Below the pieces are notes generated by a model. That model ran no database searches, was not told where the DNA came from, and worked only from the letters and a program-made list of their open reading frames with translations. A DNA stretch of 63,762 bases, filler included, from Dicyema japonicum (taxonomy: Eukaryota > Animalia > Dicyemida): NCBI GenBank assembly GCA_011109175.1. It is 4 parts of 4 records of this genome, joined end to end, with 100 filler letters (N's around TTAATTAATTAA, not from the genome) between each part and the next. Parts side by side here need not be neighbours in the genome. Positions count along the whole stretch, not along the records: positions 1 to 29,426 come from RDEW01000020.1; 3 more parts are not named here. The stretch is one strand, 5' to 3'. Below are positions 4,500-29,089 of the stretch, piece after piece. Each line of letters begins with the position of its first letter. Positions within the stretch are counted from its first letter, which is position 1. Both the position numbers and the translations under genes were made by a program.

Positions 4500-6950
4500 T
4501 TACAAAATCAAAGGGGAGGCAGAGAATGAGTCGATCCACACTTCCAATATTAGAGATCTGTTTGAAAACAGAAAGATCATTATTCTGCCTTGCCTCTTCT
4601 CGTCTCCATGGTGCAAGTAAGTGGATTTAACAACTGCATAAAACCCGTAGTGTTAGGACTCCGTTTGATTATGTAGTTGAGGGCGACGTCATTAAGATAT
4701 AGGATGAATCTCTTGGCGGGAGATAGTTTTCCACAATGGCAAGCAAATGGGGAGGTTTTGATTAAGGTTCGTCTTTAATTTAAAACTTTCATGTTAGTTG
4801 AGGGCGACGTCATTAAGATATAGGATGAATCTTTTGGCGGGAGATAGTTTTCCACAATGGCAAGCAAATGGGGAGGTTTTGATTAAGGTTCGTCTTTAAT
4901 TTAAAACTTTAATGTCTCATGATTTTTGTAACTGTTCATCAAAACCATCCTTCTCGAATGGCACTACAAAAGGTATGCAGTTATTGCAACCTCGAAAATT
5001 GAATATAGAACCTTCCAAGGCCGTTTTGTTAGGAGGATGAGGCAGAAATCGTTAACACGTTTTCAAAAAGACCACCGATATTGGAATCGGCAAAATACCA
5101 CACATTGAAAGGAGAGTTAATATTGTGCACTAATTGAGACAAATACTCCCAAACGGTTTCCTCGCTGGATACCATTCTAAAAGTGAGTGCACCGATATTG
5201 GAATCGGCAAAATACCACATATTGAAAGGAGAGTTTATATTGCGCACTAATCGAGACAAATACCCCCAAACGGTTTCCTCGCTGGATACCATTCTAAAAG
5301 TGAGTGGGATCTTCGCCAAACTCGAAAGCACTTTCCACTCGTAATCAGCGTGCATGCTTTAAAAAGCAGTCGCGTCTAACAATTTTGAAAACATTGGAAA
5401 TATCCATAGGAAACTAAGACTATGGTGGCATCTACAGTTGGTTCACATTTGTTTACGCCGAATAACTTGGACGAGAGACGACTCCAGTGTCAGACTTTCT
5501 TAGACGCATTTGCTAGGAATGTTCAAAGATAAGCTGCAAAAGTAACTTCCGACGATAATAGGACGGGTATCCAAAATCATTTTTGAAGAGGAGGTCTCCT
5601 GCGAAAAGAAAAATATCTTTCTTTATAGATGAGCATATTAAGTTTGGTTGAGATCAATTAACAAAGGTTGACCTTATTGGGAGGAGGTCTCCTGCGAAAA
5701 GAAAAATATCTTTCTTTATAGATGAACATATTAAGTTTGGTTGAGATCAATTAACAAAGGTTGACCTTATTGGAGGTGACCAAAGAGCCCGAATTATCAG
5801 TGGCCACCTCCACTCAAAAATTACAGGGACACAAAAGGTGAAGATGATTTCCTGGAGGTAATTTCTCCTCGCCTTTTATCTGCAGTTTGTTTTTATTTCT
5901 TTTGACTAAGAAATTGGAGCAAACACTGACCGTTGCTGACTCAGCTTCACAAGCCTGTTTAGAAAATTGAAGCATCATCTCCCTGGAATTAAGGTATTTT
6001 TATATTTACATAATAAAACATCCATAAGACAGCTTTTTTGGAGTTTGTGGAGAAATATATAAAATCTGGTTTAACCAGAAAGAAGCCATATCTGAAAAAA
6101 TTAATCGAAGTTTTTTTGAATCGAAACTTCTAAGAATTGTTACTGCACTTATACGGAGAGTCATATTAGCCCTGTTCACATAATGTATCTAAAAGTATAA
6201 GGTACCAAACACAGTCAAAAGCTTTGGATATTGAGTTTGAATCATCTTCCTCAGCTCTATAAAGCAACCTCAGGTGTCTCAGTTTGTACAGAATCCTCGT
6301 GATTATCAGAAAGAAAATTGCTTTTCTCAATAACATCAGATAATCGATTGGCTTTCCCATAATTTTTGATATAAAACAGATAAGGCTAATTGACACCATA
6401 ATTTTTGATCTTGATTTTCTCCCTTTTAGCAATCATACGAACAATTGTCAGTTTCAATTTTGCAGGAGCTGACTAAAACTGGCGAATAGTAACAACATTA
6501 ACTTCTTAAATATTCAATAGGGACTCACACCTATATGCTTTTATTACGTGAAAATATTTTTTTACTAAAATGATTGGCACAGACTAGCGATTTTGACTAC
6601 ATTTTCCTTTATTTAAACAAAATTAAAGATGCAGGGTCTTTTACCCAACTCCTCACTTTTTGGAATTAAGGTATTGTATGGGGATTAGAAGTGTTCTATA
6701 ACCTCTCTTTGGGATTTGTTCTTTTTGAGAAAATTTTCCAAAAATTTGGATTCTTCCAACAATGTGTGGAATATTTTTTTCCATTCGAATAATCGATCGT
6801 CTTTGAAATTCCCAACATTTGCATGTTTTATCTGACAATAATCATCTAAACGCCAACAACGGTTTAACTTATTTTATAAAATTTTTTTCCTGAGCAAGTG
6901 GGGTTGGTCTACATTTATCAAAACATTTCCAGGAACTCTTCGTTCAAAAA
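4500..6950 (-). mobile_element. Highly decayed LINE RT fragments (CR1/L2-like)
   Basis: Minus-strand remnants TLIPKK, SISKAFDCVWYLILLDTL, DISNVFKIVRR, NGIQRGNRLG (GVPQGS-like) and WYFADSNI (LFADDTNI-like); boundaries approximate. Confidence 0.45.
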
Positions 6951-7838: not shown

Positions 7839-9312
7839 ATGTTCTGGACGCTCTCTCAAGTAAACGAGCTCAGAGACGAGAACACCATGGATGGAGACCA
7901 CATCACCTCATTGGAATACAGTCAAGACGGGAAAATGCTCGCTGTGGGCAACAAGAGAGGCCACATAGTTGTCTTCCACGAAACCAAGGGGGAGCAGGTT
8001 CAGTACTCCCTCTACAGTGGATTCCAAAGTCATGATAACGAGTTCGACTGTCTTAAAAGTGTCGTCATTGAGGCCAAGATTAATTCAATCTCATGGCTTC
8101 CCCAACCCAACAACTCCCGTTTTCTGCTTTCCACAAACGGTTTTCGGCTTGCTTATTTTCAGATAAATGCGTCAAGTTGTGGAAGATGAGCGAAAAAAAT
8201 GTGAAATCAATCGACGTTGACGAAATCCGTGAGGAAGGTTCCCTCAAGGTCCCCAGAATAAAGGTTGGGGAGAGAGTGATCGAGAACACTCCTAAACGGA
8301 CTTTCAGTGGTGCTCACGTGTTCCAAATTAACTCTCTGAGTGTAAACAGTGATATGGAGACGTTTCTGTCGGGTGATGATTTGAGAATAAACATATGGAA
8401 CATCGAATCATCAACACGTGCCTTTAGTACCCTTTATAATAATTCAAGATGTGGTAGACAGGAAGCCATATTTCGCAGAAAACGTCTCAGAGGTGATTAC
8501 GTGTTCAATGTTTCATCCAATTTTGTCGTATGCCTTCATTTATGGGAGTACAAAGGGACTACTACGATTGTGTGACATGAGACAGAATGCCCTGTGCGAT
8601 CAGCACTCAAAAAGTAGTGGGGTGAGTGAGTTTAGTGTACATGGACAACTCCCAACAGTACAAAGGGACTACTACGATTGTGTGACATGAGACAGAATGC
8701 CCTGTGCGATCAGCACTCAAAAAGTAGTGGGGTGAGTGAGTTTAGTGTACATGGACAACTCCCAACATAGACCGACGTCAATATATGACGAGATCACAGC
8801 AAGTGTGTCAGATATTAAGTTCAGTCGTTGTGGAAAGTATGTTATGTGTCGAGACTACTTGTCTCTGAAGGTGTGGGACTTGGCTATGGAGAGTAGACCT
8901 TTGGAAGTTTTCAAAATAAGCGACTCAATTCGTAACAAATTACACTTTCTGTACCAGAATGACTCAATTTATGACAAGTTTCAGATGGCTGTTAGTCATA
9001 ATGACAGGTACTCGACTCTGCTATTTTAGATGCCTTCTTACTGGGAGTTACAATAACTTTTTCAGGATTTATGATCGGAGGAATCAGAAGGACTATGTTT
9101 TGCAGGCTAAAATGAGTGGGCTTAAGGGGAAGAACTCTATGAAACCTAAATCTGGTAGTATGAGCTTCCGGAAGAAGAAGGAAGACTCGATGACCTTTGA
9201 TGGACCCATAAATGTGGATTGTAAGATATTACACTGTGCCTGGAATCCCACAGAAGAGTCGTTTGCGGTGACTTCTGGCCCGACCCTCTTTTTTTATCAA
9301 AATGTTAAATGA
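7839..9312 (+). CDS. PPP2R2: PP2A regulatory subunit B55 (WD40), divergent; four 22-23 nt introns; 110-nt tandem duplication at 8548-8767
   Basis: Spliced product WTLSQV...FQSHDNEFDCLKSVVIEAKIN...LLSTNDKCVKLWK...SGDDLRINIW...CRDYLSLKVWD...LYQNDSIYDKF...TGSYNNFFRIYD...KILHCAWNP matches B55/Cdc55 motifs. Confidence 0.92.
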
Positions 9313-14360: not shown

Positions 14361-17300
14361 ATGTATCAAAACAAAAATGAACAATTGAAAATTATACACA
14401 CCGCAAAACTACCACAAAGGAAGTACAAGTCTCTCTACATCTTCAGTGAAGACAACGTGTTCAGGAAATACACAAAAATGATCATAGACTGGGGATATCC
14501 TTTTTAAACATTATTAATCATTTTATAACATTTTCCTTAATTTTTACTCCATTCGAATACATGATCCTCCTCTCCATCATTGCAAACTGCGTTGTCCTTG
14601 CCCTTGATGAACATCTACCGGAGGGGGACACTACTTCTTTGTCTCTCAAGCTTGTTTTTACTTCATTTATATTTTAGGAACAAACTGAAAAGTTTTTCTT
14701 GGGTATTTTCTGTGCCGAAGCATTCCTCAAAATTATTACATTCGGATTTGTACTCCACCCGGGGGCTTATTTGAGGAATATTTGGAATATTATGGACTTT
14801 ATTGTCGTTGTGAGTGGGTACTCTACTGTTTAAGGATTACAGATTGATATCTCTGTTCGCATCCCCCGTGACTTTCGATTTACGAACATTGAGGGCAATA
14901 CGAGTGCTCCGTCCTCTAAAGTTAATATCAGGAATTCCAAGTCAGTTTACTAAAAACTCTTTAGGTCTTCAAGTGGTTCTGCAGTCCATAGTGAGAGCCA
15001 TGGCCCCTCTTCTTCAGATTGCTCTCCTTGTCTTGTTTGCCATCGTTATTTTTGCCATAATTGGACTCGAATTCTACAACGGAATATTCCACAGAACATG
15101 CTTCAAACAAAGTACCTACTATGCCTAACAAAGATGAAATATTTATCCCCCAGGGAGAAATGAATCCTGTCACGTGTCTTTCAGAGGGATTGAGTGGGGG
15201 TTATACCTGTCCAGTCAACACCACGTGTCGTGAATATTATATTGGACCGAATTATGGAATTACCAGCTTCGACAATATAGGATTCGCAATGTTGACTGTT
15301 TTTCAGTGTATAACTATGGAAGGATGGACCACTCTGATGTACCATGTTTGAAGGGAGATCTCACTTTTAGACCAACGATGCTCTAGGAAGTCTATTCAAT
15401 TGGCTCTATTTTATTCCTTTAATAATTATCGGATCCTTTTTCATGCTGAATCTTGTTCTTGGTGTACTAAGCGGGTAAATTACGTTAACATGGAGTAAAG
15501 TGAGTTCGCCAAGGAAAGAATTCGTGTAGAAAATAGAAGATCTTTTTTTAATTTACGAAAAAACCAGCAGATGGAACAAGAATCGGCTGCCTATATCGAG
15601 TGGTTGTTTAAAGCAGGTTTTCGTCATCTCTGATTGTTAGAGGAAGTCGAATTGGAACAGATAAGATCATTTCCAAACGGTGGTAATAATTGTAATATTT
15701 GTTCAGTGAGGGTGGACTGGAATGAAATCTTTAATATCGCCAAAAAACGAGGACTAATTGGAATTAAAGGTTTACTTTGTAGGTAATTGTAGCAAAGAGT
15801 AAGTTCTGGGAATTAGAGAAAACCCTAAGGTGAATATAAAATTTATTAAAGGATAAATATTCGTAAAATTGTGAAAAGTCAATTTGCTTATTGGACTGTC
15901 ATTGTGTTGGTCTTTCTCAACACAATTTGTATATCCTTAGAGCATTATAACCAGCCTGACTGGCTCACTGAATTTCTTGGTTGTTTTGTTGTAATGTTTG
16001 AGTATTTTCTGAACTTACCTTCTTGGGTTTGTTTATTCTGGAAATGGTCCTCAAAATGTATGGATTGGGGTTCAAATTATACTTTGCCAGTTCATTTAAT
16101 ATATTCGACTGTGTGGTACTTTGTGTATACAACCGAGGTTATATTCTGTGGAATATTTGAAATTATATATTCGTCTTTTTACCCAGAGACCTCACTGGGA
16201 GTCTCGGTTCTGCGGGCTCTTCGACTTCTTAGGATATTTAAAGTTACCAGGTATGATTGATCAAATTACTTTAAGGTATTGGGCGTCTCTAAGAAATCTG
16301 GTGGTTTCTCTCTTAAGCAGTATGCACTCTATTCTCAGTCTTCTATTTCTCATATTCCTATTTATCGTGATCTTCTCTCTTCTAGGAATGCAAATATTTG
16401 GAGGAAGGCATAGTTGTTACTTTATTGTAGTTGGAACTTTGATGATGAGAAACCTTATTCCAATTTTGATTCATTTTTCATGGCTGTTCTCACTGTTTTC
16501 CAAGTTGTGTTTTTTAATCATAAAGATAATAACGGGGGAGGACTGGAATGAGGTTATGTACAACGGAATCAGATCTCAGGGAGGATCAGGAGGTTCTGGC
16601 ATGCTATATTCCCTCTATTTTATAATCCTCGTGGTTATTGGCAACTGTACAGATTATTGTTCACCACAGATGCACTACTCAATGTCTTTTTGGCTATAGC
16701 AGTGGACAATTTGGCCAATGCACAAGAGTTGACTGCCGCCCAAGAAGAGGAGGAGGTAAAAAAAGATGAGGTGTCAGTTATATACAAATTTAAAGGCGAG
16801 AAATGACATCAAATATATGTTTTCCGAAAAAATAGACCAAGAGGTAGTCGGAGATATTTTTAGTATCAGAATAAGACTGAGGAGCAAAGAGCCTTTGATA
16901 ACATAGGCCAAGAGGAGGAAGTCACAGGGACAGGATTTCAACCAAAGCCAATGTTGCCATATAGCTCATTTTTCATATTCAGTTCTACAAATCCGTATTT
17001 TTGATAAATATGTAAGAATTCGTTTGTTTTGTCACAATGTGGTGAATCTGAAATACTTTGATCTGTTCATAATGATAACGATTATTGTAAGCAGCATTTC
17101 ATTGGCCACTGAGGATCCAGTAAATCCGAATTCAATGCAAAATCAGATCCTAAACTATTTTGATTTCATTTTCACTGGTATTTTCGCTGTAGAAATGGTT
17201 TTTAAGGTTTTTTGTACAATCATGTTAGATTATTGACCTTGGAGTAATCCTTCACCCTGAATCGTATTTCAGAGATCTCTGGAATATCCTTGACTCGATA

Positions 17301-20129
17301 GTCGTGGTTTGTGCCCTCATCTCATATCCTTTAAAGTTTGTGAGTGACTCTACTTTAGAAATTTAGACAAAGGCGCTAAGAATCTCAACACGATTAAAGC
17401 ATTGAGAGTATTCCGTGTCCTCAGACCACTCAAGACTATCAACAGAATTCCAAAACTGAAAGTAAAGACTTTTATGAATTTAAGGCTGTTTTTGATTGTG
17501 TTGTTAATTCACTTAAAAATGTATTAAATATTCTGCTTGTTTATACGCTCTTCCAATTCATTTTCTCTGTGATTGCTGTTCAACTTTTTAAAGGCAAGTT
17601 TTTCCACTGTACTGACCCTTTGATGAGGACGCCTGACTTGTGCAAGTTTGAGAGTGTGCTTGATGGTTTAGGGGACAGTTTGTCGTCTATGATGATATTG
17701 GTAATCCTGTTTCAGTGGAAAACAGAGAATGGAAGAATCACCAGTTCAACTATGACAATGCTATTGACGCGTTCCTAACATTATTCACAGTTACAACGGG
17801 GGATGGATGGCCTCAGTAATATTGAACTTATTTTTGAGGATTCTCCAAATGTCAATGGACTCAACCTTCGAGAATCTTGGCCCTTCTATGTTGTACCGCA
17901 AGGAAATGGCCATTTTCTATATTGTCTTTTTTATAATATTTCCATTCTTTTTTGTGAACATTTTCGTGGCCCTAATCATAATTACATTCCAAGAACAGGG
18001 GGACAGTGAATTAGCTGATACAGAAATAGATAAGAATCAGGTATCCCTTAATATTAAAACATGTAGAAACAATGCATGGAATTTGTGATATCTGCTAAGC
18101 CTTTAAGTCGATTCCGTCCCCCAGTGACCTCCTTTCGGTACAAAATATGGAGAATAGTGGTTTCCCCAATATTCGAATATTTCATTATGGTGATGATAGC
18201 CATAAACACAGTAACCCTCATGATGAGAGTTTAAATTGCCATTACATTAAGATTTATGTAACCAATCCAACAGCAAAGACCACCCTATATGAGAACATTT
18301 TAATATACTTTAATACAGTCATATCAGTCATGTTCACTGTTGAGTCTCTACTCAAAATGATTGCTTTTGGCTTTAGAGTTTGGTGGGTTTATAGTTTAGA
18401 ATTACTTTCGTGATAAATGGAATCTATTCGATTTTATAACCGTTCTAGGCAGCATCACTGATGTGGTGGTGTCTGAAATAAATAATGTGGATTATATGCT
18501 TATTGATAGACTGAGTTTATCAATTTAGGTTTTCTCCGTCTCTTTCGTGCTGCCAGACTAATAAAACTTCTTCGTCAAGGTTATACCATCCGTATTCTCA
18601 TTTGGACGTTTGTTCAATCATTTAAGGTTGGTCTTACAATCACATTTACAGGCTCTCCCATATGTCTGTCTTTTGATTGCAATGCTCTTCTTTATTTACG
18701 CTATTATTGGAATGCAGGCATATTTCGTGCTTATTTAGCTTTTTGGCAACATTGAACTCAACTCGATGACTGAAATTAACAGACACAACAATTTTAGAAC
18801 CTTTTCTCAGTCATTGATTCTCCTGTTTAGGTGATGTAGTATTTAATACAAGATGTGCCACAGGAGAAAGCTGGCAGCTAGTAATGGTTTCCTGTTTGGC
18901 TGGAAGTAATTGTGATCCCAATGCTGGGGGTAAAGGAGAGTGTGGAGGTACTGTCGCATATTTTTACTTCACTTCTTTCATGTTCCTCTGTTCGTTTCTT
19001 GTCACATTATAAATTTATTCATAGATGCTTAATTTATTCGTGGCTGTCATTATGGATAATTTCGATTATTTGACACGTGACTCGTCCATACTTGGTCCTC
19101 ATCATCTCGATGAGTACATCCGGGTGTGGGGAGACTTTGACCCTGACGCCACGTGTATAATATATTTACGTTTAGAGGAAAACTCCACCACTCCAAACTA
19201 TACGAACTGTTAAGGAATATGGAACCCCCACTCGGATTCGGGAAAAAATGTCCCAATAGAGTGGGCTATTTGGTTGAATTTCATAATTATCCGTAGAAAC
19301 TGATTCGAATGAATATGCCCGTGGCTGAAGACGGAACTGTGGCTTTCACAACTACTTTATTTGCACTAATAAGGGAGTCTTTGGAAATAAAAGTGGATAA
19401 AGGTTTGATTAATCGCTTTCTCAGAAAATCTAATGGAAAACAAAGACGAGGAATTGAGAGCAGTTCTGAAGAAAATGAGGGGAGTTCAGTCAAAAAAATT
19501 ACTAAATTTACTGGTTCCCCCACATAGTGGTATTTAAGTTACAAATATTTTAGAGATCTGTGCGGGTAAAATGACTGTAGGAAAGATATTTGCCTTATTT
19601 TTGATGGCAGAGAATCGAGTCATACGGAAAATGAAAGAGAGGGATATTATTCAGGTAAATATTATTATAATATTAGAATGTGAGTAACGATAATGTAAAA
19701 TTCATAAATTTACATTAAGATGAATTCTCAGTGGATATTTAGGAAGATATACAACAGAATGAGTAACCAAAAACAAAACTCGATATCCTCGTATTCTAGA
19801 AAAAGCGAGTATTTTTTATTCTAATACAGAAATATATTAGTCAATACTCCCACTGGTAGTTTTCTGTCCACGGTCTCTATTTTTTTGTAAAATAGGAGCC
19901 AATTATGAGTTTTGTGAAAACTGCCTCTCAGAAACTAAGTAACCGTTTGATTGCCTCATAATTTACAGAGAAAGAAAAGGAAGAGATTAAACGTTCTAAA
20001 AGAGCCCTTCCTACAATTAAGGATATAAAGAGAAGACCGAGCAAAAGGAGAAAACTACCACCAATTCCAAACAAAATCATCATAGAAGGAAATGAAACAT
20101 CAACTGATCATCTACAGTGGGAAATATAA
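14361..20129 (+). CDS. Cav2: Voltage-gated calcium channel alpha1 subunit, Cav2 type; at least 38 introns; start codon and distal C-terminal exons uncertain
   Basis: Continuous spliced frame: [142 protein letters not shown]; Cav2-diagnostic wording throughout. Confidence 0.95.
14495..14547 (+). other. U12-type (minor spliceosome) AT-AC intron, 53 nt
   Basis: 5' ATATCCTTTT, branch site TTTTCCTTAAT (14531-14541), 3' TTTTTAC; removal restores IIDW-G(GG|T)-PFEY; no GT-AG solution is apparent. Confidence 0.9.

Positions 20130-28499: not shown

Positions 28500-29089
<590 letters not shown>

Follow-up and report, generated by a model that had tools for sequence, protein, structure and literature searches.

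The intron located between the N-terminus and segment S1 of domain I (called here the D1S1 intron) is a rare U12-type AT-AC site, found in nearly every Cav/Nav gene (PMC6259924, PMC3634016). In rat Cacna1c introns 2 and 13 are minor introns (PMC8767276). Such introns are bound by a preformed U11/U12 di-snRNP, which contacts the 5' splice site as well as the branch site cooperatively. The 3' splice site is selected through its proximity to the branch site, a polypyrimidine tract and U2AF not being required, and the optimum for this distance in vertebrate U12 introns is 11-13 nt (PMC3584512). AT-AA are the commonest non-canonical termini of minor introns (PMC10639083). AT-AC introns of the U2 type, with G at +5 and without the U12 branch motif, are known from sodium-channel genes (PMC2831892).

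Minor splicing has been lost several times, in nematodes, myxozoans, Oikopleura and tardigrades, all animals with fast-evolving and compact genomes, according to a survey in which dicyemids were not discussed and introns below 30 bp were excluded (PMC10639083). Animal introns shorter than 30 nt have been reported only in myxobolid myxozoans and in Dicyema japonicum (PMC13644364), whose genome has a G+C content of 36.7 % and consists of repeats in one half (PMC6736024). In the text of the Larue and Roy supplement neither Intoshia nor Dicyema has an entry, and a search of the literature library turned up no study of dicyemid U12 introns or minor snRNAs. To our knowledge, dicyemids have the shortest introns among bilaterians.

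Here we describe a 53-nt AT-AC intron at the D1S1 position of a Cav2-type gene of D. japonicum. Its U12-type signals, its exact placement on a conserved exon junction and its positional homology with introns of other animals are observed directly. The intron is very probably a genuine U12-type intron, descended from the ancient Cav/Nav minor intron, and would be removed by a minor spliceosome retained in this spiralian host.

The Cav2-type gene

The gene lies in a stretch of DNA that is 63,762 nt long (filler included; assembly GCA_011109175.1). The analysis covered positions 1 to 29,426, taken from record RDEW01000020.1, which contain the gene and are referred to below as the 29 kb window; the G+C content of this part is about 36 %, in agreement with the 36.7 % given for D. 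japonicum (PMC6736024). The 5' part of the gene is organized as follows:

14361..19687, + strand: Cav2-type voltage-gated calcium channel alpha-1 gene, with four domains and about 30 or more tiny introns, its 3' end and linker regions being only roughly modelled
14361..14494, + strand: exon 1, an open reading frame that begins at the first ATG in frame and extends to the 5' splice site
14495..14547, + strand: AT-AC intron with U12-type signals, 53 nt
14548..14653, + strand: exon 2 (segment S1 of domain I), the first base of which is the last base of a Gly codon
14654..14677, + strand: the next intron, of the GT-AG class and 24 nt long, as is usual in this gene

The host gene was assigned to Cav2 by a PDB match, a homolog search and trees, and all four domains of such a channel were found in it. 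Exon 2 (14549-14653) matched residues 96-129 of human Cav2.2 in the PDB with an E value of 1.8e-11, a 22-residue peptide of exon 1 aligned with the N-terminal motif in nine homologous Cav2 proteins, and a HMMER search of the whole library, in which the pore exon of domain I served as the query, returned full-length Cav2 proteins. The Cav2 set comprised proteins of Drosophila, Crassostrea, Octopus, Schistosoma, Fasciola, Branchiostoma, Saccoglossus, Antedon, Trichinella, vertebrates, Hydra and Intoshia. A protein search with the open reading frame across exon 2 returned no product of the same species and only one exon of another animal. Apart from this intron the gene encodes an intact and conserved Cav2 with four domains, so exon 1 must join exon 2.

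The introns of the gene were taken from two gene models, which agreed over the bulk of its length. The 27 confidently placed introns, with conserved blocks on either side, measured 19-26 nt (median 23, mean 23.4). Two introns (16408-16430 and 18718-18738, + strand; 23 and 21 nt) could be modelled only as GC-AG and both start with GCATA, which is unusual for this class. The III-IV linker contains a GT-AG intron of 26 nt (18041-18066, + strand, after ...EIDKNQ) with the sequence GTATCCCTTAATATTAAAACATGTAG, in which a U12-like GTATCC start leads directly into CCTTAAT. Because these two motifs overlap it would be unable to function as a U12 intron, and it may be a chance match or a collapsed relic. 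The intron of Saccostrea that is homologous to it in position (18216-18421 of the sequence L004) starts with GTATACCTAATT and lacks a U12-type branch site, so the ancestral intron at this place was probably of the U2 type. The sole Rfam match in the window lies near the 3' part of the gene, at 19710-19788 (+ strand). It is a sub-threshold match to the C/D-box snoRNA family snoMe28S-U3344 (E = 0.31; 28.9 bits, the gathering score being 50) and is probably due to chance.

Two other coding regions were noted in the window. A gene for the PP2A regulatory subunit B55 lies at 7839-9312 (+ strand; match to human PPP2R2A, E 1.8e-23) and has a 23-nt GT-AG intron at 8140-8162. Motif scans of its strand revealed no U12-type signal of a second minor intron in this gene, and the one junction read there, 8139/8163, is GT-AG. 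Part of the B55 coding sequence is repeated in a direct tandem duplication (about 110 nt, around 8560-8780), which may be genuine or may have arisen in assembly. The open reading frame at 28500-28910 (+ strand) ends in a C2H2 zinc-finger motif with a weak Pfam match (E = 0.004) and probably represents exon 1 of a zinc-finger gene.

Splice signals of the 53-nt intron

The intron reads ATATCCTTTT...TTTTCCTTAATTTTTAC and is 85 % A+T. Its terminal dinucleotides are AT (14495-14496) and AC, and three signals were located in it:

14495..14503, + strand: U12-type 5' splice site ATATCCTTT, identical to the consensus /RTATCCTT(T), as printed in PMC6259924, at nine positions of nine
14532..14540, + strand: U12-type branch-site sequence TTCCTTAAT, consensus TTCCTTRAY
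14546..14547, + strand: 3' terminal AC in the context TAC/T

The 5' and branch motifs are 28 nt apart. The branch A is either 14539 or 14540, which leaves 7-8 nt to the last base of the intron and falls short of the 11-13 nt optimal in vertebrate U12 introns (PMC3584512). The sequence features of the U12-type class, namely the 5' splice site, a branch site near the 3' end and the termini, were thus all present. The features of U2-type AT-AC introns were not found, as position +5 is C (ATATCC) instead of G and the branch motif TTCCTTAAT is in place.

The preliminary description of this DNA had reported perfect minor-class signals, a branch site placed only 7-8 nt before the 3' end, and a length about twice that of the neighbouring major introns, and each of these observations was borne out. 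At 53 nt, against a median of 23 nt, the intron exceeds its neighbours in length by a factor of about 2.3. It may not be the longest in the gene, as weakly conserved linkers may contain introns of 57-120 nt inseparable from over-splicing in the model.

Choice of the exon junction

Exon 1 ends with TGG GG, a Trp codon and two bases of a Gly codon, and the intron is therefore in phase 2. If the intron is retained, the frame of exon 1 meets a TAA stop at 14505-14507. No GT occurs from 14460 to 14590 and no AG from 14487 to 14621, so that a GT-AG intron cannot remove this stop without the loss of conserved coding sequence. Removal of the 53 nt completes the Gly codon (GG/T), joins ...KMIIDWG to PFEYMILL... 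and gives the peptide D-W-G-P-F-E-Y; at the aligned junction E-W-G-P-F-E-Y is read in oyster, fluke and amphioxus.

Three models of the junction between the two exons were scored against nine Cav2 homologs, and the best score, in each case with oyster, was as follows:

14495-14547, + strand: 53-nt AT-AC model, 156 bits and 68 % identity to oyster, gap-free in eight of the nine homologs
14459-14487, + strand: best GT-AG alternative, 130 bits, with 11 residues deleted and an 8-residue gap needed
3' end at 14529, + strand: 35-nt in-frame AT-AC alternative, 149 bits, with six extra residues and no branch site

The Cav2 channels aligned without a gap under the 53-nt model included those of oyster, fluke, fly and amphioxus, and the homolog that required a gap (one) was that of Trichinella. 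The earlier claim that excision of the 53 nt restores W-G-P-F-E-Y is thus upheld, and the gap-free protein alignment suggests that the junction 14494/14548 is the one used in the mRNA.

The frame of exon 2 meets no stop across the AT-AC intron and further upstream to 14450 (open span 14450-14674, + strand). For this reason the automatic gene model followed a false GT-AG path, with a 23-nt "intron" at 14429-14451, which was rejected by smoothed homology support and by direct scoring. Gene prediction based on open reading frames or confined to GT-AG introns would produce a wrong model for the 5' end.

Motif matches in the window

The motif scan of the 29 kb window revealed seven occurrences of RTATCCTT, with about three expected, and eight of TCCTTAAY, with about four expected. 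A relaxed combination of a 5' site, a branch site and AC/AG was present in 8 % of simulated windows, and the motifs alone are therefore not decisive. The sole complete U12 combination in the window is that of 14495-14547, and strong evidence for it is provided by the location of the motifs exactly on a conserved exon junction together with the restored frame.

The other matches to ATATCCTT in the Cav2 gene (15931, 17284 and 17324) were rejected as splice sites, being coding (codons N-I-L, S-Y-P-L and I-S-L), and so was GTATCCTT in the Saccostrea gene (L004 16926), which is also coding. A weak minus-strand candidate at 4821-4755 was discarded since it lies inside a tandem repeat. The repeat occupies approximately 4690-4950 (- strand) with a unit of about 120 nt, and each copy contains ATATCTTAAT and AACCTTAATC, mimics of weak U12 signals.

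The same intron position in other animals

The D1S1 intron of Cav/Nav genes, represented by intron 2 of rat Cacna1c and intron 3 of Scn5a, shares with the D. japonicum intron the gene family, the site, the AT-AC class and the consensus (PMC6259924, PMC3634016, PMC8767276), in agreement with the preliminary description, which had rightly stated that vertebrate Cav/Nav alpha genes carry an AT-AC minor intron in this region. The exact codon and phase were compared in the following three sequences:

Intoshia linei, LWCA01000814.1 (L003 10111-10413): 5' ...GAA TGG AA/ATATCCTTTT, 3' TCCTTAATGATTCAA/T CCC TTC GAA; 303 nt, AT-AA, phase 2, branch site TCCTTAAT + 8 nt
Saccostrea echinata, Cav2-like gene: 5' ...AGT AA/ATATCCTTG, 3' CCTTAACACACCTTAG/A TTT TTT GAA; about 950 nt, AT-AG, phase 2, branch CCTTAAC + 10 nt
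Logan contig of an unidentified animal, 3' end only: CCTTGAC + 15 nt ...CAG/G CCG TTC GAA TAC

The position just before P-F-E-Y, in phase 2 after W and two bases, is common to the introns of D. japonicum, Intoshia and Saccostrea. The resemblance to the orthonectid Intoshia extends to the ATATCCTTTT start and the TCCTTAAT branch site. There the branch A lies 8-9 nt from the end of the intron, a distance similarly short to the 7-8 nt found here. Like the intron described here, that of Intoshia is also longer than the typical intron of its own genome, several times in its case (median 57 bp, PMC6543705). The two differ in length and in the last dinucleotide, AA in Intoshia and AC in D. japonicum. 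Both full-length comparators, at 303 and about 950 nt, are much longer than 53 nt, and the D. japonicum intron differs from the known D1S1 introns also in the short distance of its branch site from the 3' end (7-8 nt, the optimum being 11-13 nt) and in a host gene whose other introns are of about 23 nt. On the basis of shared position, phase and signals the sequence comparison identifies 14495-14547 as the orthologue of the known ancient D1S1 minor intron.

The Intoshia linei protein OAF66841.1, annotated as 'Mitochondrial folate transporter/carrier, partial', was found to be a fused gene model (L003 6600-16294, LWCA01000814.1), the C-terminal half of which corresponds to the first two domains of a Cav2 channel.

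Phylogenetic placement of the Cav2 protein

In IQ-TREE analysis (LG+C20) the Cav2 protein model was placed within a spiralian group containing Schistosoma, Fasciola, Octopus and Crassostrea (SH-aLRT 98), and this group was nested inside the protostomes. A clade of the Cav2 protein model with Hydra Cav2 was rejected by the AU test (p = 0.0056). A myxozoan affinity, considered because myxobolid introns also measure about 22 nt, is thus unlikely, and a dicyemid fits best. The distinction is of importance since myxozoans are among the animals listed as having lost the minor spliceosome (PMC10639083).

Alternative explanations

A competing view is that the minor spliceosome has been lost, that a streamlined major spliceosome removes a U2-dependent AT-AC intron and that the U12-like motifs are a relic. 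The major machinery may indeed be permissive, since in short introns of the D. japonicum type the 5' splice-site requirement is reported to be reduced to 'GTa' (PMC13644364). Sodium-channel genes, which encode four-domain channels as well, do contain U2-type AT-AC introns (PMC2831892), and no genes for U11, U12, U4atac or U6atac were seen in an Rfam scan of the 29 kb window. The known U2-type AT-AC introns, however, have G at +5 and no U12 branch motif, whereas here ATATCC and TTCCTTAAT are found. Moreover, the persistence of two perfect 9-nt motifs in a fast-evolving lineage would be unexpected if they were not under selection, the intron is still twice the normal length with a U12-like spacing of the motifs, and the same signals occur in the spiralian relatives Intoshia and Saccostrea. 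We regard U2-dependent removal as improbable. The suggestion that A+T-rich spacer DNA contains the motifs by accident, or that the locus is an assembly artefact, draws on the repeated chance occurrence of RTATCCTT and TCCTTAAY in the window and on the proportion of simulations with the relaxed combination, but leaves unexplained why the motifs sit exactly on a conserved junction, why their removal restores the frame and why this intron type is known at the same place in other animals. It is hardly credible.

Equally improbable as U2-dependent removal is that the 53 nt are not spliced as proposed, either because translation starts at Met 14561 with exon 1 as a decaying relic or because a 35-nt intron is removed, ending with AC at 14528-14529. 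The open frame of exon 2 upstream through the intron to 14450, and the score of 149 bits of the in-frame 35-nt version, are compatible with these models. The conserved Cav2 N-terminal motif of exon 1 is, however, in frame up to the 5' splice site, and identity to oyster continues across 14494/14548 at 68 % with no gaps. Segment S1 would be cut short if translation began at Met 14561. The 35-nt version would have no upstream branch site, would turn the branch motif into coding sequence and would add six residues absent from all homologs.

Intron length and the minor spliceosome

The motifs are intact both here and in Intoshia, and the rest of the intron is wholly different in length and sequence. 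Intact motifs amid divergent spacers in two fast-evolving lineages point to continuing selection on the motifs and hence to a working minor spliceosome; the sequence comparison thus suggests that this genome of tiny introns still has one. The short distance from the branch site to the 3' end in both animals hints at a lineage-specific tolerance.

The greater length of the intron may be explained by the way in which it would be recognised. If a single particle, the di-snRNP, grips two 9-nt motifs at once, shrinkage could have stopped at 53 nt, and the intron would not be able to shrink to the approximately 23 nt of the neighbouring U2-type introns. Put more generally, and tentatively, as we are inclined to doubt it, the two spliceosomes may have different length floors, of about 23 nt for U2-type introns and about 50 nt for U12-type introns, the latter set by the grip of the di-snRNP on its two 9-nt sites. 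Were this true, the minor introns of this lineage would cluster tightly around 50 nt as a length class of their own, their branch sites lying unusually close to the 3' end. They would be the shortest minor introns of animals and would offer a natural gauge of the footprint of the minor pre-spliceosome.

The proposal in the preliminary description that 53 nt may approximate the minimum substrate size is not supported in that form, as it refers to a single intron, and further introns above 50 nt may lie in the poorly conserved linkers of the gene. Furthermore, the minor introns of Blastocystis have a median length of 39 bp (PMC10639083), so 53 nt is no general lower limit for U12-dependent splicing. 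The Blastocystis introns are mostly AT-AC and are compacted together with the other introns of the genome, as is the case here, but they belong to a protist, number in the hundreds and are shorter than 53 nt.

The intron at 14495-14547 belongs to a known kind of conserved minor intron, and what is new is the lineage and the extreme genomic setting in which it occurs. Its preservation suggests that the second spliceosome survived extreme intron shrinkage in this genome, and it provides a concrete locus at which to ask how short minor introns can become and whether the two spliceosomes differ in the minimum length of intron that they accept.
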